Positions 8,255 to 48,112 of a stretch of 64,000 bases of DNA are shown in pieces. A program made the translations under genes and the position numbers. Each line of letters begins with the position of its first letter. Position 1 is the first letter of the stretch. This stretch comes from Octopus sinensis. Taxonomy: Eukaryota. The stretch covers positions 114,328,001-114,392,000 of the forward strand of contig NC_042997.1 of the NCBI RefSeq assembly GCF_006345805.1, written 5' to 3'. The notes beneath the pieces are model-generated. The model searched no databases, was not told the origin of the DNA, and worked only from the letters and a program-made list of their open reading frames with translations.

Positions 8255-9160
8255 GAAATTATTGTATACAGTGCCCAGGTGCACCACACTTGTCAAAAAT
8301 GCATATAAAGCATATGCAGTAATGTACAAATGTCTGGAAAGCGAACAGTGTACGAGTCAGATACATGCTTGCGTGTGTATGGAGAGGAGAAAATCAGGTG
8401 TAGTGTTAGCGAATCTTGGGAAGCATGGAAGTTTTGAAGGATGCACTGCTCCGACAACTAACAACTGATGCTGGCAGTTTGTTCCATGCTTCAGCAACTC
8501 TCAGCGTGAAAAAATGTTTCTGAAAGTCATGGGAGCTGTGCTGTTTTCTGACTTTGTAAACATGTCCATGGGTGTTAGAAAGGTGGAGTTTGAAAAGGTG
8601 CTCAGAGTTATTGTTAGTAAGATGGTTAATAATTTTATGGGTGTCTGCCAAATTAGCTGCCAGACATCAGAGTTTCAATGTATCCATGCCCAGAGAAGTA
8701 AGGCATTCAGAATATGGCAAATGCCTGATGGAGGGTATTCTCTTGGTTGCATGTCGCTGAACGGCTTCCAGATGATTAATATCCTGGGCAAGATAGGGGT
8801 TCCAGACTGGTGATGCAAATTCCAGGTGAGGTCTTACCATAGCTATATAAAGCTGCAGATAGATAGCCAGAGAGTGGCTCACAAAGGACTTGCTGAGTGA
8901 TGCTAAGACACCTTCAGCCTTCTTGGCAATTTTAGCGATGTGTTTTGTCCAACGCAAATCGCTGTTGACAATAACACCCAGGTCACGTTCACACGAAGAC
9001 TTTTTGAGAATAGTGTTGTGGAGGGAGTAAGCAGACACTGGGTTTTTCCTCCCAAAATGCATGGTGGTACATTTGTCCACAGCCAGCTTGAGTTGCCAGT
9101 CCATGATCCACTGCTGCATTGTGTCCAGGTCTAATTGCAATAGAGATCTATAGTGTACAG
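8255..9160 (-). mobile_element. CR1/L2-like LINE, 5'-truncated 3' fragment
   Basis: ORF 8667..9179 (KCTTMHFG, ERDLGVIV, VRPHLEFASPVWNP, LEAVQRHATK) and ORF 8406..8651 (FFTLRVAEAWNKLP) are separated by a stop. The tail gtgcacctgggcactgtatacaat recurs near 6160-6185 and 35641-35690. Confidence 0.88.
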
Positions 9161-9876
9161 GATCTGACCTCTTTATCATATGTTATCAATTTATTTTAGG
9201 GATTTTACACTTTTTCTCACTACATCGTATCAATGATTGATATAATTTCAACACAATATTAAATAGAATAAAGGATTCAAAAAGTTAATCACCAAAGATG
9301 TAATTTAATAGTGATTTTGAAACATATATTCAAAAGTAATTTATAAGACAGAAAATAAAGGCATTTAAAAGTAACTTGGATTTTATTGTAGAAACAGCCT
9401 TAGTGGCATTGTTCAGGGTTCTCCAATTTTTAAAAGGATGCAAAGCTAGTTCTAGCAAAATGTAAACTTTTTAAATTGATAATTAACATAATTATTTCTT
9501 TGAAATCCATTTTGCTGTTGTTCCGGTGGAATGTGAAAAGCATCCAGCTGTAGAAACCTTGCCAGATCAGATTGGAGCCTGGTGCAGCCTTCTGGCTTGC
9601 CGGTCTTCAGTCAAACCGTCCAACCCATGCCAGCATGGAAAGCAGACATGATGATGATGAAAGCAAAAATTTATTAGTAGTTTCTTTTATCTATTTGATA
9701 CCAATCCACCTGAGGGTTGTCTGATACAAACTTGCTTTAAAGTAATCTAAATTAAAACTTTCCATCAATATTTCATGTTAGTCTAAGTCCTAAGCATCAG
9801 CTTAATAATAACAAAATTTCATTCTTCATTATTTTCAAAATTAAGACAGAATGCTGTATTGAAAAGGTTAACATAC

Positions 9877-11445: not shown

Positions 11446-11704
11446 CATCCTTTGGTGTGATAACCCAAGTGTAAAGAAATCCTGCAGCAATTGAGTAAGA
11501 AAGGACAATGTTGTTTTGTTGGCTGACGATGCCCAAAATTTGATCCAAGGTGATGGGTTGTAAGTCATGGTTAAACTCGTTTCTCACAAATCCTGATAAT
11601 AAGTTAGATTGCCGCTCCAGGAGTAAATCTATGAAGGCTCGGGTGCAAGCTCTCTCAGCAACAACCAAGGCTTCTTCATTACAGTCCACTGCTACTAACA
11701 CTCG
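11446..11704 (-). CDS. TTC28: TTC28 exon (259 nt, phase 0 to 1)
   Basis: Acceptor ttaaccag|CGAGTG and donor GATG|gtaagt. Translates RVLVAVDCNEEALVVAERACTRAFIDLLLERQ...YSIAAGFLYTWVITPKD. Confidence 0.93.
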
Positions 11705-11731
11705 CTGGTTAACAAATAATAATAATATTAA

Positions 11732-11764
<33 letters not shown>

Positions 11765-11781
11765 TAGTAATTAGCTCTTAG

Positions 11782-12395
11782 GCTGTAACTGAAGGAGAAA
11801 ATGTAACTATTCTTTGGGACTTCCCAGTATATACAGGTAGGACCATCAAAGCAAACAAACCAGATAATGTTGTGAAAGACAAAAGCAATAAAGTCTGTTT
11901 ATTGATTGACATGAGCAAACCCTGTGACCGTAATATCTTGGCAAAAGAATTTGATAAGCTCAGAAAATATAAAGATCTGTTAATCGAAATTGAAAGGATG
12001 TGGCATCTCAAGACAGTTACAATACCAGTAATTGTAGGAGCACTTGGAATGATCAAAAACGGAATTGAAAATTATTTAAGAATGATCCCTGGCTTACCAT
12101 CCATACATGAATTGCAAAAGATTGTCTTAACTGATACGTCACACGTATTGAAAAGAGCATTGTCGCTGTGAATTTTCTTTCTTTTTTCCACCTTTATTTA
12201 TTTATTTACTTTATTTTTTATTTTTTCCTTTTTCTCTCTGTCTTCCCATTTTTCTCTATCACATGACCCTGTAAATGAACAATCTAGTGTGCTTGTTTTA
12301 ATGGCCTACCAATATATACAGTACATTTCTCTGCTCTGGTCGAGACTTGGAGCCAACTTGTACAAATACAAAGCAAAAGTCAAACATATAATAAT
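11782..12395 (+). mobile_element. R4/Dong-like non-LTR retrotransposon 3' fragment with restriction-like endonuclease domain
   Basis: Open frame 11782..12171 reads ILWDFPV...KANKPDNVVKDK...LIDMSKPCDRNILAKEFDKLRKYKDL...IPVIVGALG, a PD-(D/E)xK-type C-terminus. It is followed by a 3' UTR ending in a taataat tail. Confidence 0.8.
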
Positions 12396-12546
12396 CATCA
12401 TCATCATCGTTTAACGTCCGATGATGATAATGATGATGATTATTATATGTTTGACTTTTGCTTTGTATTTGTACAAGTTGGCTCCAAGTCTCGACCAGAG
12501 CAGAGAAATGTACTGTATATATTGGTAGGCCATTAAAATAAGCACA
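12288..12546. repeat. Near-perfect inverted repeat (121-bp arms, 17-nt spacer)
   Basis: 12288-12408 is the reverse complement of 12426-12546, with 2 mismatches by hand alignment. Confidence 0.95.
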
Positions 12547-12677
12547 GAAACATATGTATGCATATGTGTATGTATGTATGCACGTATGTATAGCTTTTTG
12601 TGGTGGTGGCCTTATGTTCTTCTTTATTGATAAAATATAAATCACTTCTTTGCCAAAATAGCAACTGACTAACTCAC

Positions 12678-12955
12678 CTGTAAAGCTTGATAGCATGCTG
12701 TCTGTAAATCAAATAACGAAAGTTTGTAGTCACTACTATTGTACGATTCCCTTCGAATCATTTCAAATAAATCCGCAGCTTGGAAAAGTTGCTGCTGACA
12801 CTCTTCCAGTTGGCCCTGGCCCCATAATGACAGTCCAAGGCGATATCGAATTTTGGCCTCGTCTTCCCGTCTTCCCAGCTGCTCTGCAATCTGCAGGCCC
12901 TGCTGCAAATATTGAACTGCCTGTATATAGTTTCCTAATGCATGATGAACTCGAC
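12678..12955 (-). CDS. TTC28: TTC28 exon (278 nt, phase 1 to 0)
   Basis: Acceptor ttttcaag|GTCGAG and donor CAG|gtgagt. Translates GRVHHALGNYIQAVQYLQQGLQIAEQLGRREDEAKIRYRLG...DYKLSLFDLQTACYQALQ. Confidence 0.94.
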
Positions 12956-24948: not shown

Positions 24949-25659
24949 CTGGAAATAAAATGGAATTAAGAACATTTATTTCTTTTACTTTTGTAATTTA
25001 AGTAATCAGCTAATAATTCAGCAATCAATAGATCAACAATGATACAGGTTATTGACACAACACAATTAAAAATGAATTCTTTTTGCTTTCACTTTCTAAA
25101 AATAGAAAAAACTGTTTTATTTTCATAGATACTTTTTGTAATTATATTGCCATTTCATCATCAATAATTCAAATTACAATGAAAGTAAACTAAGTTTACT
25201 TTAGAAGCATTGAAATGTATTGAAAGATTCAGAAATAATTCTCAAACGCAGAATAATACTAACAGAATAACAGGAACAGGATAAAAATTTGCCAGCAGCC
25301 AGTCATGAGACTCAAACTCACATCCCTGTGATTACTGGTCATAGTGCTTTACCATTAACTTAAACTGCCCTCTGACAAATTAATCTGCAATTTTAAAGCT
25401 TATAAATCTAGCTTTATAAGACGCTGATGTTAAATTCAAATTACGATGATTAGAAGCATTGAGATGTATTGAAAGATACAGAAATAATTAATTCTCAAAT
25501 GCAGAATAATGCTAATTAGAATAGCAGGAACAAGATAATTTGCAATTCTTCAGCTTATAAATCTAGCTTCTAAAAAGCAGACTTCATTTACTTTCATTGT
25601 GATTTGAATTTAACAGCAGCATCTTATAAGCTCAAAAATTGCAGATTAATTTGTCAGAG

Positions 25660-25731
25660 GGCAGTTTGGCTTAACAGTAAAGCACTATGACTGGTAATCA
25701 CAGGGATGTGAGTTTGAGTCTCATGGCTGGC
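25660..25731 (+). pseudogene. tRNA-like sequence in a repeat, not a functional tRNA; inverted copy at 25298-25369
   Basis: Cloverleaf remnants: D stem GCTT/AAGC, anticodon arm TATGA-CTGGTAA-TCACA and T arm GTGAG-TTTGAGT-CTCAT. The acceptor and anticodon stems are mismatched. Confidence 0.6.
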
Positions 25732-27413
25732 GGCTGGCAAATTTTTCTGCAATAATATGGATATTTCTTTCTGTTCCTGCTATTCTGTTAGCATTATGAG
25801 AATCAATTATTTCTGTATAATTCAAATAATGTTAAATAAAATATAAGTAGATTCAAAAATATGATATACTAACTAAAGTTGTATTGACTAGCAGTTACTT
25901 CACTTTTCAGTCTCTGCATTTGGACAGATAATCATTTCTGTTCAACTTGCTCTCTTTTTGTATCATTGCTTTTGGTTTTAATTTAAAATTTCTATTGCTT
26001 CTCTAATTGTTACATTCAACTTATATTTTTTCTTCATTGAGTTTATCTTACTACTAACTTCAATTTACATAAGAATTGGAGATGCTTGTGCCTAGTCATT
26101 AAATCTGTAATTACTCTGTAGAATGGTTAAATCTTTTCCAAGAAAAACTTTACTTTTTCTTAAAAAAACAGTAAATGGGTATCACAGTTAAAGTTCTAAA
26201 TATTAGGAGAGCATATCCACCAGGGAAAATAGCCATGGTTGTAATAATAATGATATGCTGAAGTTTATTCAAAAGTAATTCACTAAGCAACTTGTATGTC
26301 CAAGGTGATGGACTAAGTCCATGATTTTAGGTCTTATCCAAGTAGAGTTAACCAGAGCTTCTCAACAGCAACACAGAACATCCAACAAAATACATAGAGC
26401 TATTTTAGAAATTGATTGCAACATTTATCTCACATCTAATTTATGACACTCCCAAGACGCATCAATGATATTTCATCGATACTCATTTTTTACTACATTG
26501 TAATGTTTAACATATGCCTGTATACATTGATACAGTATAGAAATAATTTTGAAATAATATATTAACATATTAATATATTATTTTAATATTATTTTTATAT
26601 AATGTTTTTAAATAACTAATAAAAAAGCTAAGTTGTGGGCAACTCTTATTGCGACTTCCTAATCAGTTTATCAAAGCTGTTCAAATAGGGATAGGAGCTG
26701 AAAAATGGATTTCGTTGGTTAAGAATTATTGTCATACCATGCAATGAATAATATATAATCATTCATCAAAATTAAGATATTTTTATTGAAGAAGATAGAT
26801 TGTTTCTTTATATTTATATTTATTTTTATTTTTCCTCCTCCAGAATCTTGATGAAAAGGCAATGCCCATGGCTTTTGCACACCCTCTGGTGAGATTGGCA
26901 CTGTTAAATGTGTTATTTAAACTGTTGAAAATCAATACCTGCAGGAAAGACATGAGCAAAGAGGAGATTCTAGATGACTGATGTTCCTAGGGAAAGACTG
27001 TAATATTTTCATGACATGAAAATATCACAAACTCATGTAAAGAAAATTCAAATTATTTTATCTGTTTTATAAACCTGTTGTGTACTATTCTTGAAAAATA
27101 ACCAATCTGTTCAGTAAGAGTAAGTAAAAAAAAAAAGATATTTTAAAATAAAATTCTGAGAAAATACTTAACTGTGCCAAGATTCAAAAAATTATTTACC
27201 TACATTGCAGAGAATATTTTCATTTTAATTTTAGCCATATTTCATAAATAACCAGTTACAGACTTATTAACAAAGTCTTTTACTTAGACACAAGGAATGG
27301 TTATATATTTTCAAATTGTGCAATGCCTTTTAACAATAGAAACCAATATTTGAAATATAAAATAAATAGAAATAAAAACAATATTTTTTTGAAATGACTT
27401 TAATGAATATTAC

Positions 27414-29593: not shown

Positions 29594-32255
29594 TTTTACC
29601 AAGCAGCTTCACTGTGTGCTTTAGCATTGTTACTATAGAAGCAGTCCAGATACTTATTATTGATCAGACTTCTTCTATGCATACAAATGCAGGGAAGCAG
29701 GGCTGCATGGTTAGGAAATTTGCTTCACAACCACATGGTTTTGGTTTCAGTTCCACAACATGGCACCTTAAGCAAGTGATTTCCACTATAGCAATGGGTC
29801 AATCAAAGCATTGTGGACAGATGTGGTAGAGTGAAACTGAAAGAAGCCTGTCATTACCATCATCAACATCATTTAACGTCCGTTGTCCATGCTAGCAAGC
29901 CGGAAAGCTGTACCAGACGCTAGTCTGATTTGGCATGGTTTCTATGTCTCGATGCTCTTCCTAACACCAACCACTCAGAGTGTAGTAGGTGGTTTTATGT
30001 GCCACTGGCATGGGTACCATTTGCATGACACCAGTATCTGCCATGACTATGATTTCACTTGACTTGATGGATCTTCTCAAGCACAGCATATTGCCAAAGC
30101 TCTCGGCCATTTGTCATTGCCTCTATGAGGCTCAACCCTTGAAAGGTGCTTTTCACAATGCACACACGCACATACACACATCATCATCATCATCATAATA
30201 AATGATGAGGATAATACATGTCTGTGCGTGTGAATAGATGTTTGCCTCCCTGTCTTAACATTGCATGATCATTGTAAATGAATGTCCTTCATTTCCAATA
30301 TTCTGCAAAAACATGTCTGGCCTTGGGAAAATATTACTTTGCTTGGAAACTGGTAGGGGTTAATGACAGTAGAAAATCTGTCTCAGTAAAACTGTCCAAC
30401 CCATGTAATCATAGAAAAATTAATGTTATGAGTGTGCATGTGTGTGCGTGTGCATGCATGCGTGAACACACACACACCAGCTGGTTATGTAGTCAAGAAG
30501 TTTGCTTCTCAGTTACACGGTTTCGGGTTCAGTCCCACCATACAGCACCTTGGGTGAGTGGCTTCTATTATAGCCAACTAAAGCCTGGGTGGATTTGTTA
30601 GATGTAAAGTGAAAGAAACCCATTGTGTGTGTGTGTGTCAATGTGTATATACACACATATATACACACAATGACTTACATATTTAGACTTTCTGAATTTG
30701 AATCCTACCATGGCCAACTTTGCCTTTCTTCCTTGGGTGTTGATAAAAGGAAATACCAATTAAGTTCTAGGTTTGATTGTTTGACTAATCCCCTCTCCTA
30801 AAAATTACTGAATCTATTCTAAAATTAGAAAGAATAATTAAGGGCATTTCCACCCCCAACAACTTATCTTGTGTTGCAAACTAAAATATAGCTGTTTTTC
30901 TTAAGCTTAACTCGTTACCATTTTTCTGACACATGGATGCAATTTTCTATGAATGTAATATATAAAAGCAATAAGAGAGGTCTTTGATCCCCACATATCA
31001 ATCACAAATCCATACCCTAGCACTAAAATCAGATTATGTATATCTCAACTTCTAGATTTCTACTCCAGAAGTTGTAGATATACAACTTCTATTTCTAGTT
31101 CCATTCCATATTTTGATAGTATTCATTAACATAGAAATGGTTGTAAACATACTGAAATGAAACAAGGCCATTTGTTATTATCAAGTCATCCATGTATTTC
31201 ATTTATATATTTGTTTAAGGATGTTTCCTTCTCTGACATTAATATTAAACAATCACTTGTCTTTACTTGCAAACTAAAACTTTTTTCTTCAGCTAAAATC
31301 TTTGACATGTCTGTAACAAGTGCTAACATTAAGTTGATAATACTGTGTGTGTGTGTGTGTGTAAATACATCATAAAGCAATTAAAGAGGTCAGACAAAAA
31401 TAGGACAGTGAGGTGCAACTGCAACAAGAAAACACACATGGACAGTATGTCTAATCAACTTTTATTGACCAGAATGGATGGAGGAGTAAATATGTCAATA
31501 TAGGTTAATTTGTACATCATGCTCTGTGTATCTTTTGGGCAGAGATGATTATAGAGTAAAAAAGAGAAAAATCACAAAACTGATGAATAAGCAGAATCCA
31601 GTATTTTTTAACCTCCACTACATTTCCATGTATTTAACTTTCTGTCAGTTGAATGCTTTTTGATAAATGTTATTTAGCAGGAAACAGGTGAGAAAGAAAG
31701 AGGGAAGCTGAAAAGAGGCACACACAGTACATTTGTGGCCTATAAAAGCTGGTTGCAACTGAAATTTTATGACAGGTTTATAAGAAATAAAACTGATAAT
31801 AGACTAAAGTAGACTTTTATGGTTTGATATTAAATATCAAGGATATTATTTCAGACTTAACCGGTTAGTCAAAGCAGTGCAAAGAAATTTATTTTTACAA
31901 ATAATATCACAGAAAAGAAAGCTGTCATCTTAAGATGTATTTATGATTAAGAATACATCTCTTGCTTTTGGAAGTGTTTTTACAGTTGACATAAACATTT
32001 GGAAATAATTTAGACCATATTATACCCAGGAAAACTACATCCAGTACACCTGGTTGTAATCATCAGGAAATGACCATTCTTCTAAAAGTGTAACGGTTCC
32101 AATTCAGTGGTTTGATTTTAGAGTTTCTAGTGCAATATTATAGTTATATATTAATAGTCATACATTAAATTGTTCTTAGTTTTTAAAACAGAAAAGTAAA
32201 AAAACAAAAGAATCATAAATATTAAAGTTATTTAAATATCACATAAAAATTTTAC

Positions 32256-44000: not shown

Positions 44001-45496
44001 AAAGCATCCACTGTACTCTCAGAGTGGTTGGTATTAGGAAGGGCATCCAGCTGTAGAAACTTTGTCAGATCAGATTGGAGGTTGGTGCAGCCTTCTGGCT
44101 TGCCAGCCCTCAGTCAAACCATCCAACCCATGTCATGACGGTGATGATGATGATAAATGAAACAATAAAATGGATGGTCATACAGGGATGAATTTGTGTC
44201 CTTACAGAATGAAAACATAAACACTAGTTAGTTTATAGCAGTGTTAGTCACTAATAACCCTATAGCGTCTTTCAAAGATATCAATCACTTAAGGAACAGT
44301 TATTATTCTGCTTGGAGATAAAGATTTATAGAAGACACAATGTCCAGTTGTGGAAGCATTGCTTCAATGTACACCAACTGGAAAACAGCTTAAAATTGAA
44401 TGTCTGTATTTATAGGGGTCAAAGCAAACCCATATGAATCAAAACTCTCATAAGTTATAATAAGTGTACTCTTTCCCTTTTTTACAATGTTTTCAGTTGA
44501 AGTGATGACCAGACATTTGTAGGGTTCAAGAATTTGTTATAGTCACTGAATAACCTGAAAAAATTGGTCTTTCTTTAAACATCACAGATATAATTTAGAA
44601 CAACATAGGGAGTGCTTATCTGTGTGCAGAAGACTACATGCATACCAAATACAGCCCAGACAGTATGTAGATAATCTGGAATGTTCTTGAAGGAATGCAC
44701 TTTCTTGAAAATGGCTCATTCAAATTTGGCAGGGTAGAAAGAATATTTTGTGACTGAAGAAATCCATGACACTGATCCTAACAAAGTTAAAGCAACTAAA
44801 ATAAAGAGTTTCATGAAGACACCTACTTTGAACAACTGGATCAGACTTGCAGGCAGTCTAAAAGGGATCACCTGAGATTCAGTTCAGAGCTCACCACTGT
44901 GATGACTGTTTTGGAATGTGCAATGATACAGTTCTGGAACCACATGTCATTTCATGACAGTTTCTATGATTTGATCAGAAGAGAAATGTGCAAAGCTTAA
45001 GACTGACCACTACATACAGATGTGATAACCAAGTGAAGTATTTTTGTGGCATTGTTACCAGCGTCGCCTTACTGGTACTTCTGCCCCATGCTAGTAGGGT
45101 GATAAGAGCACCATCCAAGCATGATCATTGCCAGAGCGGCTAACTGGCTTCCGTGCCGGTGGCACATAAAAGGCACCATTCGAACATGCATGATCGTTAC
45201 CAGCGTCGCCTTACTGGCACTTATGCCAGTGGCACGTGTAAAAACATTCGAGTGAGGTTGTTGCCAGTACCGCCTGACTGGCCCCTGTGCCAGTGGCACG
45301 TAAAAGCAACCACTACACTCTTGGAGTGGTTGGCATTAGGAAAGGCATCCAGCTGTAGAAACTCTGCCAGATCAAGATTGGAGCTTGGTGCAGCCATCTG
45401 GTTCGCCAGCCCTCAATCAAATCGTCCAACTCATGCTAGCATGGAAAGCGGATGTTAAACGATGATGATGATGATGATTGGACGAATTGGTTTTAC

Positions 45497-45775
45497 TAGC
45501 TATAGATGAAGTAGATAATGGAATGGAGTACAAGTCCTAGTAAATTATCTAAGTAGTACCTGTGAATTTGGTACCTGTTGTTGCATCCAATCACTAGTTC
45601 TGCCCATAACTATAGTGGAAGCAGAGGAGGAATCCTTCTCAAGCATACTGGATGCACTGTTTTAATAGACAGAACTAGTGACCAGATGCAACAACAGGTA
45701 CCAAATTCACAGGTCCTACTTAAATAATCTACTAGGATTTTTACTCCATTCCATTATCTACTTCATCTATAGCTA
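45497..45775. repeat. Fold-back element (106-bp arms, 67-nt spacer)
   Basis: 45497-45602 against 45670-45775 shows 8 mismatches in 106 by hand alignment. Confidence 0.9.
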
Positions 45776-48112
45776 AAAAAAGCCAAGTCATTGATAAGGA
45801 AGCTCGAAACAAGCAATCTATGTGAAAGCTAGTTACTTTCTGTGAGTCTGTGGGAAATGACTACCCAACCACCAGGAAGGCCATTGCAAGTAACAGAAAA
45901 AATCAGGCTCGTGTATCAGAAGCCTTGATAAGGAATTTTATAATGACCCTTCAAAAAAATTCAGTCAGACTTGCCACAAAGAAACATCAACAATATTTGA
46001 AGAATCAATACCTGGACTATGGTGATTGATAATACAGTTTGATGTTCTTAATACTGTGCTCATTTTTATGATTGTACAAGTAATTCTGTTCCTCTGTAAT
46101 ACAAGTTTTTATGTATATGACAGAAACTACATGGTTGAGTAAATGCATGAATCTTTGAAAGTGAATGTAGTATTATTAGTGAAGATATCATCATCATTTA
46201 ACATCCATCTTCCATGCTGGCATAGGCTGGACAGTTTTGATAGCTGGTAAGCCAGAAGGCTACACCAAGCTCCACTGTCTGCTTTAGAATTTTTTTTATG
46301 GCTGGACACCCTTCCTAAAGCCAACCACTTTACAGAGTGGACTGGTTGCTTTTTATGTTACACCAACATAAGTGGTGGCCAAGATAACATGGCATCAACA
46401 CCAGTAAAGTCTATCTAGTTAGTTCCTATTATAAATCCCACATGAAGAGTATAATAAGGACTTTTATTTGTTACTATTTCACACAGTCTTTAATATCAAA
46501 TGCATTTAAACTGTTCTGCATTATTTTCTAAAACTGAAAACTAATTGGGAATTACTAATTAGATACCTCTCCTTGATTTCAAATTTATGATAGGATGCAT
46601 TGAACAGCTAATTTATAATAGTAAGGATTGAGCAGGTATTATTTAACAACCTTTTCCAATAATTCCAAAATAATTAAAACCACTTGTACTTCTAGCAAAT
46701 TGCAAAGACATCATAATACATGCTCAATATGATTTAAGACTTACAATGCTTACTAAATCATTTAAAAAAATTTAATTTGATTTAACTGCTGTTGAAATTA
46801 ACTTTCAACTGTTACAAACTCCAAATTAACTACTAGACATAAGTGATACAAGCACAAATCTGAAACAGACAAGAAAAACCAGCCCTCTAAAGGGATTTGA
46901 ACTACAGTTCTGTTACTTGTTGGACAGCTGGGTTACTGTTTACACTACAGAGCACAAACCAATCCCTCTCTTACTAATCAAGTCCTTATATCTATTTTTC
47001 TACTTGTTTTCTTTCTTTACTTTTTCTCTTTCCTTAACCATGCTATTTTTGTCTCTATTACTTCTTCAAAACTTGTACAAAGTTGTTGTTTTTTTTGTTA
47101 TATAACATTAATAGCAACACAATAAATCAAGTTAACTTGTTTTCAATAGTTCTTCAGTTGCTGAATTAATTCAAACATTACAATTTAGGTTTTTTGATAG
47201 TATACTGAGCCACTTGAAATATGAGGAGAACTTCTTTCCCCCTACCCTTTTTTATAGTAATTTGTAACTATTTTCCGCAGTAACTCTTTGAATGCCATTA
47301 CCAAAAGAACAAATAACTTTGCTGTAATTATTACAATAATAAACTGTACGGTTTCAAAACAAATTTATCTGAGAATAATTATGTAAAAGTAATTAAAAAC
47401 AACTTGATATTATTTTTATAAAATATTAAAAAAAGTAAAGGGTTTTAGAAAACTTATAATTTTTTAATTTTTATGAATTTCACAATTGTGTTTTTTAGTT
47501 TAACACTTTAGCATTTAATTTGACCATATCAGACCCAAAATATTCTACCTGTATTAGGTTCAAACTGGCCAGATCCAGCCTCTTACACCTACACTACAAT
47601 GTTATTCTAGAAATATACAATCACAGCATCGAAATCTTGAAGTTATGAGATAGTGTGGCATTAATTCGAAACAAAATGATTAAACAAGAATTACATTTGA
47701 CAGAATAATCTGAATGCTAAAGGGTCAAAATACATTTGAAATCTTGTTACAGTTTCAGAAATAGTATTTGAAGAGAGGCATGCAAATATAAATGCAGCTG
47801 AGTTGGCAGAGCTGTTTTAAAATGTGTTTTAATTTTAAAAAATCAATAAAAATTGATTATCAATTAAATCAGAAAGGCAACCAAATTAAAACTTAATTGA
47901 AACAATGTTGTAATTTTAACCAAATTAATAAGGAGATACATCATCATCATCATCATCATCATTTAACGTCCGCTTTCCATGCTAGCATGGGTTGGACGGT
48001 TCAACTGGGGTCTGGGGAGCCCGAAAGCTGCACCAGTCCAGTCAGATCTGGCAGTGTTTCTACAGCTGGATGCCCTTCCTAACGCCAACCACTCCGAGAG
48101 TGTAGTGGGTGA

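Follow-up and report, generated by a model that had tools for sequence, protein, structure and literature searches.

As an intron of a TPR-coding gene of Octopus sinensis carries an almost perfect palindrome close to its splice donor, we were interested whether this structure is a real part of the genome and, if so, by which process it was made. A sequence-only reading had proposed a very recent fold-back or template-switch duplication, triggered at a (CAT)n junction next to a splice donor of TTC28. The analysis covered the geometry of the palindrome, the elements that make up its arms and the processes that might have joined them, within a 64-kb stretch of DNA (hereafter the window).

Geometry of the palindrome and its host intron

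A repeat search and a base-by-base comparison placed the two arms at 12288-12408 and 12426-12546, each 121 nt long and complementary at 119/121 positions (98%), which confirmed the near-perfect 121-bp palindrome with two differing positions described before. In the gapless comparison both mismatches (12295/12539 and 12405/12429) lie within the arms, and 17 nt separate the arms (GTTTAACGTCCGATGAT). Gapped alignment led to pairing of 12288-12409 with 12419-12546 (arms of 122 and 128 nt), matching at 121/122 positions with one 6-nt indel. By this alignment and the fold of the single-stranded DNA, the arms differ by one substitution and by 6 nt that are inserted in the (CAT)n tract on the right, and the hairpin loop comprises 9 nt (TTTAACGTC, 12410-12418) closed by CG/CG. 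At the outer ends of both arms complementarity breaks off abruptly, and base-by-base comparison found none beyond. The ssDNA fold reached -141.5 kcal/mol against -22.9 ± 3.7 kcal/mol for shuffles (z = -32), and the pattern (CAT)3, followed after ≤30 nt by (ATG)3, occurs a single time in the window, at the palindrome, with 0 occurrences expected; an origin by chance is ruled out. The palindrome (12288-12546; 34% G+C, with AT-rich arms) is by far the most perfect short-spacer inverted repeat of the window. Self-BLAST detected no further copy of the unit elsewhere in the 64 kb, and comparison of the flanks detected no target-site duplication around it.

The surrounding gene lies on the minus strand, with the following features:

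12678-12955, minus strand: upstream TPR-coding exon of a TTC28-like host gene (Pfam TPR_12, E = 2.4e-8; the homologs are TPR proteins)
12677-12676, minus strand: GT of the splice donor CAG/GTGAGT, a consensus match
12547-12677, minus strand: unique intron sequence from the palindrome to the splice donor, which in self-BLAST matches itself only and is without SINE or LINE similarity
about 12553-12592, within the preceding stretch: (TATG)n microsatellite
11446-11704, minus strand: next host exon, with the acceptor AG at 11706-11705

The intron between these exons measures 973 nt (12677-11705) and houses both a LINE piece and the palindrome, whose arm begins at intron base 132; the distance of 132 nt to the donor given previously is correct. 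The reading frame carries across the intron (...YQALQ followed by RVLVAVDCNEEALVVAER...), and when the spliced two-exon sequence was used as a query against the protein collection, homologs matched across both exons with a coverage of up to 100%. At the best homologous loci the exon is 72-80% identical and the intron unalignable. A CHAT domain was found downstream in a distant ortholog locus (L001), and Pfam finds nothing in the window's next exon alone. TPR repeats combined with CHAT are the TTC28-type architecture. From the TPR exon here and the CHAT domain there, TTC28 is a plausible identity for the host gene, but none of the best homologs is named TTC28.

Elements that make up the arms

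The left part of the intron and the palindrome are composed of the following parts:

11717-11772: (TAA)n/(TAG)n microsatellite, which immediately borders the truncated LINE piece on its left
about 11777-12171, plus strand (antisense relative to the host gene): remnant of the C-terminal part of the ORF of a Dong/R4-like non-LTR retrotransposon with truncated 5' end, recognised by translation
12172-12395, plus strand: LINE 3'UTR, ending in a short native tail TAATAAT (12389-12395)
12288-12408, plus strand: left arm, taken as the template copy, which runs on leftward into the rest of the LINE
12396-12408, plus strand: (CAT)4C microsatellite, outside the canonical LINE tail
12409-12420, minus strand: 12 nt of a SINE constant end (plus strand GTTTAACGTCCG; SINE-sense CGGACGTTAAAC)
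12421-12546, minus strand: right arm with a longer microsatellite, taken as the new inverted copy, consisting of an (ATG)-type tract with 6 extra nt (12421-12438), ATTATTA (12439-12445) and inverted LINE 3'UTR (12446-12546)

Translation of the LINE piece gave an ORF remnant with the stop codon TGA at 12169-12171, 80% identical in amino acids to P0121 and P0155 (two ENA contigs) and 70% identical to LOC115230721 of Octopus sinensis. On the nucleotide level the piece shares 83-84% identity with two relatives (L005 and L006) from 11777 on, and because the alignments with relatives start there, the window copy is regarded as 5'-truncated at 11777. The domain homologous to the window ORF sits downstream of RVT_1 and zf-RVT in L005, and the window copy is without RT. 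Pfam returned no significant family for the C-terminal domain itself, in which a K-P-D...D..K pattern can be recognised by eye only. The microsatellite at 11717-11772 is probably what remains of a (TAA)n target, as is typical for Dong-type elements, which is suggested by its sequence and the (TAA)n ends of the relatives, and on the gene strand it doubles as the pyrimidine-rich tract ahead of the acceptor.

MAFFT alignment matched the 3'UTR of the window copy with L005 and L006 up to the start of their (TAA)n tails. Such a tail was detected in 4/5 sampled LINE relatives (L005, L006, L008 and L009), among them one Octopus sinensis copy that can be aligned to the very end of the 3'UTR; in the fifth (L007) the tail is obscured by other microsatellites, and a (CAT)n tail is absent from all 5. 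Since the lineage ends in (TAA)n in 4/5 relatives, the LINE here ends at TAATAAT, and the last 108 nt of its 3'UTR (12288-12395) form the LINE part of the left arm. The (TAA)n-tailed relatives, the (TAA)n/(TAG)n flank on the left of the window copy and its TAATAAT end agree with Dong/R4 elements, so translation, relatives and MAFFT alignment together bear out the assignment of the left arm to the 3' end of an R4/Dong-like element. At 80% amino acid and 83-84% nucleotide identity the relatives define the (TAA)n tail of the lineage and not a subfamily consensus, and a subfamily master copy ending in TAATAAT(CAT)n may be a counter-possibility to the fold-back reading developed below. The subfamily-specific core of the 3'UTR gave 0 matches in a metagenome scan, and self-BLAST revealed no second copy of the LINE family in the 64-kb window.

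The centre of the palindrome belongs to a SINE family with about 12 recognisable copies in the window. In all of these an (ATC)-rich tract of 2 to about 8 units stands directly before G/A-TTTAACGTCCG, and the (CAT)4C at 12396-12408 corresponds to this (ATC)n, that is, to the (GAT)n tail of the SINE on the other strand. Every other copy runs on as CTTTCCATGCTAGCATGGG, and this continuation is missing after the 12-mer at the palindrome; comparison of the roughly 12 copies thus upheld the description of the centre as a SINE end truncated at the turn. A Smith-Waterman search of the right flank against the SINE copies scored no better than shuffles, indicating no SINE remnant there. The other end of the SINE lies at many different positions and contains tandem repeats of about 60 nt; scattered far ends are the pattern of 5'-truncation, and therefore the constant end is probably the 3' end. 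The SINE would then probably read ...CGGACGTTAAAC(GAT)n towards its 3' end, an orientation taken from the pattern of constant and variable ends only. Neither ARAGORN nor Rfam found a tRNA-like head, and around 12 SINE copies a target-site search gave no convincing target-site duplications and no definable endonuclease target motif.

These assignments correct the role given to the microsatellite. A (CAT)n junction is indeed present in both arms, but it belongs to the SINE end and not to the LINE tail, and the turn lies 12 nt into the SINE at a CG/CG microhomology instead of within (CAT)n. The claim of a (CAT)n-triggered event was not borne out.

Proposed fold-back copying and competing explanations

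Both arms share one composite, consisting of LINE 3'UTR, an identical TAATAAT and (CAT)n. Because this composite includes the foreign (CAT)n in both arms, the right arm is best explained as a DNA-level copy of the LINE/SINE junction: a new LINE retrotransposition would bring a (TAA)n tail of its own length without (CAT)n, whereas copying of neighbouring DNA reproduces the composite. The left arm is taken as the original and template, because it continues unbroken into the rest of the LINE 3'UTR and the ORF. In line with this polarity, the left arm keeps at 12295 the ancestral G common to L006 (L005 is not clearly aligned at this base), and the derived base is found at 12539 in the right arm. 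At the turn, CG at 12419-12420 pairs with CG at 12408-12409, a 2-bp microhomology placed exactly there, which is expected by chance in 1/16 of cases and hence is weak evidence. The sole indel between the arms is a slip of two microsatellite units, one of them imperfect, and the SINE body that the ancestral allele, as we infer it, would have carried past the 12-mer is missing.

Therefore, from the composite present in both arms, the continuity of the left arm, the polarity of the substitution and the microhomology at the turn, the palindrome is most readily read as a genuine inverted duplication of local DNA, young in evolutionary terms and made on the level of DNA, to which we assign a probability of roughly 0.6, and which is most likely neutral. 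The proposal of a recent fold-back or template-switch duplication is in this respect supported by the TAATAAT and SINE-type (CAT)n common to both arms. The starting point would be a 973-nt intron with a 5'-truncated Dong/R4-like LINE that ended in a short (TAA)n tail, directly followed by the (GAT)n tail of a SINE in the opposite strand. A free plus-strand 3' end 12 nt into the SINE (...ATCATCG TTTAACGTCCG-3') might have been released by a double-strand break in a pre-existing SINE or left by SINE reverse transcription that was aborted after 12 nt. The right flank without SINE remnant fits the break-in-SINE and the aborted-insertion variants alike, and the many positions of SINE far ends make a 12-nt stub compatible with an aborted insertion. 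The single-stranded end would then snap back, with its terminal CG pairing with CG at 12408-12409, and a polymerase (Pol theta-like, Pol delta or a retroelement RT) would copy about 125 nt of its own strand backwards, in the order (ATC)n with the two-unit slip, TAATAAT and 101 nt of LINE 3'UTR. Finally, the nascent end would be joined to the other DNA end at 12547 with loss of the intervening DNA.

Each of these steps has a documented counterpart. Pol theta extends stem-loops in a unimolecular reaction that starts from no more than two terminal base pairs and includes slippage, and the result can become part of end-joining products (PMC11292364). In yeast, double-strand breaks give rise to foldback inverted duplications, most of them 5-34 bp in length (PMC11724301), and ends induced by LINEs can turn into foldbacks when the extended 3' end anneals to itself (PMC11702581). 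The copy of about 125 nt seen here is long against documented snap-back inserts of mostly 5-34 bp (PMC11724301), which counts against the fold-back reading.

Concerning the age of the event, 1 substitution was counted among 108 non-microsatellite positions between the arms. With the octopus TE clock (JC 0.09 = 25 My; PMC13282606) a rough calculation would date the separation of the arms to about 1 My before present (Poisson upper bound about 7 My), and the age could be about zero if the arm difference is a copying error. The near-identity of the arms therefore suggests that the palindrome is young, and youth would also be expected because fragility is reported for inverted repeats of high similarity and close spacing (PMC7999016, PMC10164571).

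As an alternative to fold-back copying, two separate retrotranspositions may have placed the arms tail to tail, the second being a 5'-truncated copy of about 121 nt in opposite orientation, primed from the plus-strand end ...GTTTAACGTCCG-3'. This would explain the arm length without coincidence as the length of the shorter copy, since the left copy extends far past the arm, and also the different lengths of the right and left microsatellites, as expected of independent tails. Further, both 3' ends of the central 12-bp duplex point outward like primers, and a published study describes Dong-R4 LINEs as recently active and abundant in Octopus vulgaris (PMC13282606). What it fails to explain is the identical TAATAAT plus (CAT)n in both arms, as (TAA)n tails of differing length close all informative relatives and (ATC)n is part of the signature of the SINE end. 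An insertion at SINE position 12 should moreover leave the remaining SINE beyond the insert, which is absent, and the window holds no second copy of the family. In a variant, a read-through transcript of the neighbouring copy would have served as RNA template, but this would require an extra, hypothetical antisense transcript. We therefore regard tail-to-tail insertion as rather unlikely.

Somewhat less probable still is an artefact of sequencing or assembly, in which a long-read fold-back or strand-switch chimera, or a polishing error at a hairpin-prone microsatellite, would have created the second arm. Near-perfect palindromes with tiny loops are indeed a known signature of strand-switch chimeras, and instability in vivo is to be expected of such a structure (PMC7999016, PMC10164571). 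A fold-back read, however, is palindromic throughout, whereas the complementarity here stops after 121 nt on both sides and the contig is collinear beyond it, passing a consensus donor and entering the correct next-upstream exon, with the frame kept across the intron. As the gene is collinear and the palindrome bounded, an artefact would need two precise switches, both of them carried into the consensus. A copy made within a read would moreover lack the substitution and the 6-nt indel that set the arms apart, unless these differences came from polishing. A simple fold-back-read artefact thus appears unlikely.

The lowest rank falls to the idea that the 259-bp unit represents one copy of a hairpin which is mobile or under selection, either a foldback/MITE-like element derived from LINE tails or an hpRNA/miRNA-like locus. 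The window does contain another short-spacer foldback of similar size (45487-45786), which shows that this genome has elements of the kind, and the RNA hairpin described below is extremely stable, but the left arm shows no element boundary and continues into the LINE 3'UTR and ORF, target-site duplications in the flanks and extra copies in the window were not found, and Rfam gave no family match, which together make this explanation scarcely credible. As a MITE or foldback transposon the palindrome was rejected, with its left arm unbroken into the LINE and flanks that share no duplication. L1-type twin priming and double TPRT at a single staggered cut were both rejected on geometry, since either would bring 5' ends, not tails, to the centre, whereas here both arms consist of the same 3'-terminal segment and turn their tails towards the middle.

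Comparison with known systems and the predicted RNA hairpin

The inverted duplication closely resembles snap-back templated insertions (Pol theta TMEJ or SD-MMEJ) and Pol delta foldbacks, in which the insert is likewise the reverse complement of DNA adjoining the junction (PMC11292364, PMC11724301, PMC5728401). Common to these systems and the locus are the turn on a 2-bp terminal microhomology, slippage in repeats and disregard of element borders; under the fold-back reading, capture of the other end with loss of the intervening DNA would be shared as well. In contrast to them, the copy of about 125 nt is several-fold longer than the usual 5-34 bp, and here the event occurred in a cephalopod germline, fixed or segregating, instead of at an experimental break. 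Foldbacks induced by LINEs, through L1 ORF2p breaks or self-annealing cDNA flaps, are alike in that they turn at the 3' end and tail of a retroposon, the site where TPRT starts (PMC11702581); under this model, the palindrome observed here would result if a SINE insertion was aborted and the 3' end then annealed to itself. L1 foldbacks differ in being large chromosomal events in cultured or cancer cells, whereas the copy seen here is short and collinearity of the chromosome is regained after it. With the inversions produced by L1 twin priming the locus shares inverted LINE sequence within one locus; twin priming, however, inverts the 5' part against the 3' part of one RNA and leaves a single outer tail, whereas here the 3' segment is present twice, the tails face at the centre and a non-LINE microsatellite is included.

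Long palindromes and fragile inverted repeats have comparable dimensions, with arms of >100 bp, about 98% identity and a spacer of <20 nt (PMC7999016, PMC10164571, PMC3855049), and for palindromes in this range of size and spacer the extrusion of hairpins or cruciforms and the induction of breaks have been reported (PMC7999016, PMC10164571, PMC3855049). By analogy, the palindromic DNA should be unstable. Fragile palindromic AT-rich repeats are resembled only loosely by arms of 34% G+C, and fragility is here a prediction.

On the RNA level, the fold computed for the gene-sense RNA of 12270-12690 (-232.8 kcal/mol, z = -25) has a stem of about 123 bp, in which the two arm differences would give one C-A mismatch and one G-U pair. 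Folding thus confirmed the long duplex of about 120 bp expected in the pre-mRNA, with the qualification that "perfect" includes the C-A mismatch and the G-U pair. The computed fold exceeds the stable duplex of about 30 bp in a transcribed region that makes a dsRNA substrate, and the arms contain 79 adenosines. From its intron position between two coding exons, the palindrome would be transcribed. Long near-perfect dsRNA is a promiscuous substrate for ADAR and can be diced, and by analogy the hairpin in the host pre-mRNA should be hyper-edited by ADAR and possibly diced. A close parallel is provided by inverted Alu pairs and editing inducer elements, which are likewise intronic long dsRNAs made from retroelements near an exon (PMC526178, PMC4053975, PMC5654063); compared to Alu pairs, however, one element has been duplicated here, the spacer of 9-17 nt is much shorter and the identity of 98% much higher. 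Intronic hairpins can serve as editing inducer elements for nearby exons (PMC5654063). That the hairpin has been co-opted, or is becoming so, either as an ADAR-recruiting editing inducer that raises recoding of the TPR exon or as an hpRNA-like source of small RNAs that match the 3'UTR of an active Dong/R4 LINE family and silence it in trans, seems very improbable; if it were true, a repair scar would have created a regulatory dsRNA in one step. The presence of the hairpin implies no function.

If real, the locus is a natural case, unusually clean, of a long snap-back inverted duplication (about 125 nt) in the germline of an animal, in which template, turn point, microhomology and slippage are still legible because the LINE/SINE junction where the event took place can be recognised. 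It would then illustrate that one event, be it repair or aborted retrotransposition, can create a near-perfect intronic dsRNA hairpin without two transposon insertions. In a coleoid, a hairpin of this kind would lend itself as a natural probe of ADAR hyper-editing, and it may also be a fragile site that is polymorphic. Intronic hairpins derived from TEs are already well known, as are templated inverted insertions, and a templated fold-back duplication that makes such a hairpin belongs to a known class and opens no new question.

Elsewhere in the window, two further inverted structures were considered as signs of a recurrent process at SINE tails and rejected, since the inverted repeat at 45487-45786 is an unrelated, self-contained foldback and the quasi-palindrome at 30148-30232 has decayed too far to be counted. 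Inverted pairs of TE origin with greater divergence are frequent in the window, as in other TE-rich genomes.

The LINE 3' end and its left flank

The Dong/R4-like LINE piece shares a conserved block of its 3'UTR, GCTTGTTTTAATGGCCTACCAATRTATAC, with its relatives of ~84% nucleotide identity, and this block was detected at three places:

window 12289-12320, LINE piece in the TTC28-like intron
L005 1748-1794, related LINE
L006 3563-3608, related LINE

In the window, the start of the block coincides with the outer end of the palindrome. The block may be the region of the LINE that is recognized by its reverse transcriptase, or the match may be coincidental. To the left of the LINE piece lies a (TAA)n/(TAG)n microsatellite (11717-11772), which on the gene strand forms a pyrimidine-rich tract directly upstream of the intron acceptor (AG 11706-11705). 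The next intron contains a piece of another non-LTR retrotransposon, distinct from this LINE (8406-9179, minus strand), with two reverse-transcriptase-like ORFs of 81 and 170 amino acids.

The SINE family

The SINE that contributes 12 nt to the palindrome turn is abundant, with ~12 copies in the window, of which the following are examples:

3010, 3787, 42089, 47962, plus strand, SINE copy
6761, 45459, 59385, 62221, minus strand, SINE copy

Across the ~12 window copies the constant end was invariant, reading ...CGGACGTTAAAC(GAT)n, whereas the far ends lie at many differing positions, and tandem repeats of ~60 nt were present internally. A tRNA-like head was not found in the SINE by Rfam at permissive thresholds. 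As the SINE ends in (GAT)n and the neighbouring Dong-like LINE in (TAA)n, this LINE is probably not the mobilizing partner of the SINE.

Further inverted repeats in the window

Other inverted or palindromic repeats in the window include the following:

30148-30232, decayed quasi-palindrome, GCACACACGCACATACACA(CAT)6-AATAA-ATGATGAGG...TGTGCGTGTG
45487-45786, self-contained foldback of ~300 bp, arms of ~117-134 nt, 86-90% complementary, spacer of 23 nt
25283-25405 and 25624-25746, inverted repeat with 123-nt arms at 91% complementarity, spacer of 218 nt

The first of these sits at the far end of a SINE copy starting at 29862 and may be an older, smaller fold-back with a (CAT)n tract at its centre, the signal being low-complexity and weak. 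The second resembles a MITE or an element of the foldback type; it showed no relation to the LINE or the SINE and had no second copy within the window, and it is directly preceded by the (GAT)6 tail of a SINE copy ending at 45479. For the third, ARAGORN/Rfam analysis led to the only tRNA call in the window, a tRNA-Thr(GGT) at 25660-25732 inside the right arm, and the pair probably consists either of two repeats derived from tRNAs or of a tRNA gene and its inverted duplicate.
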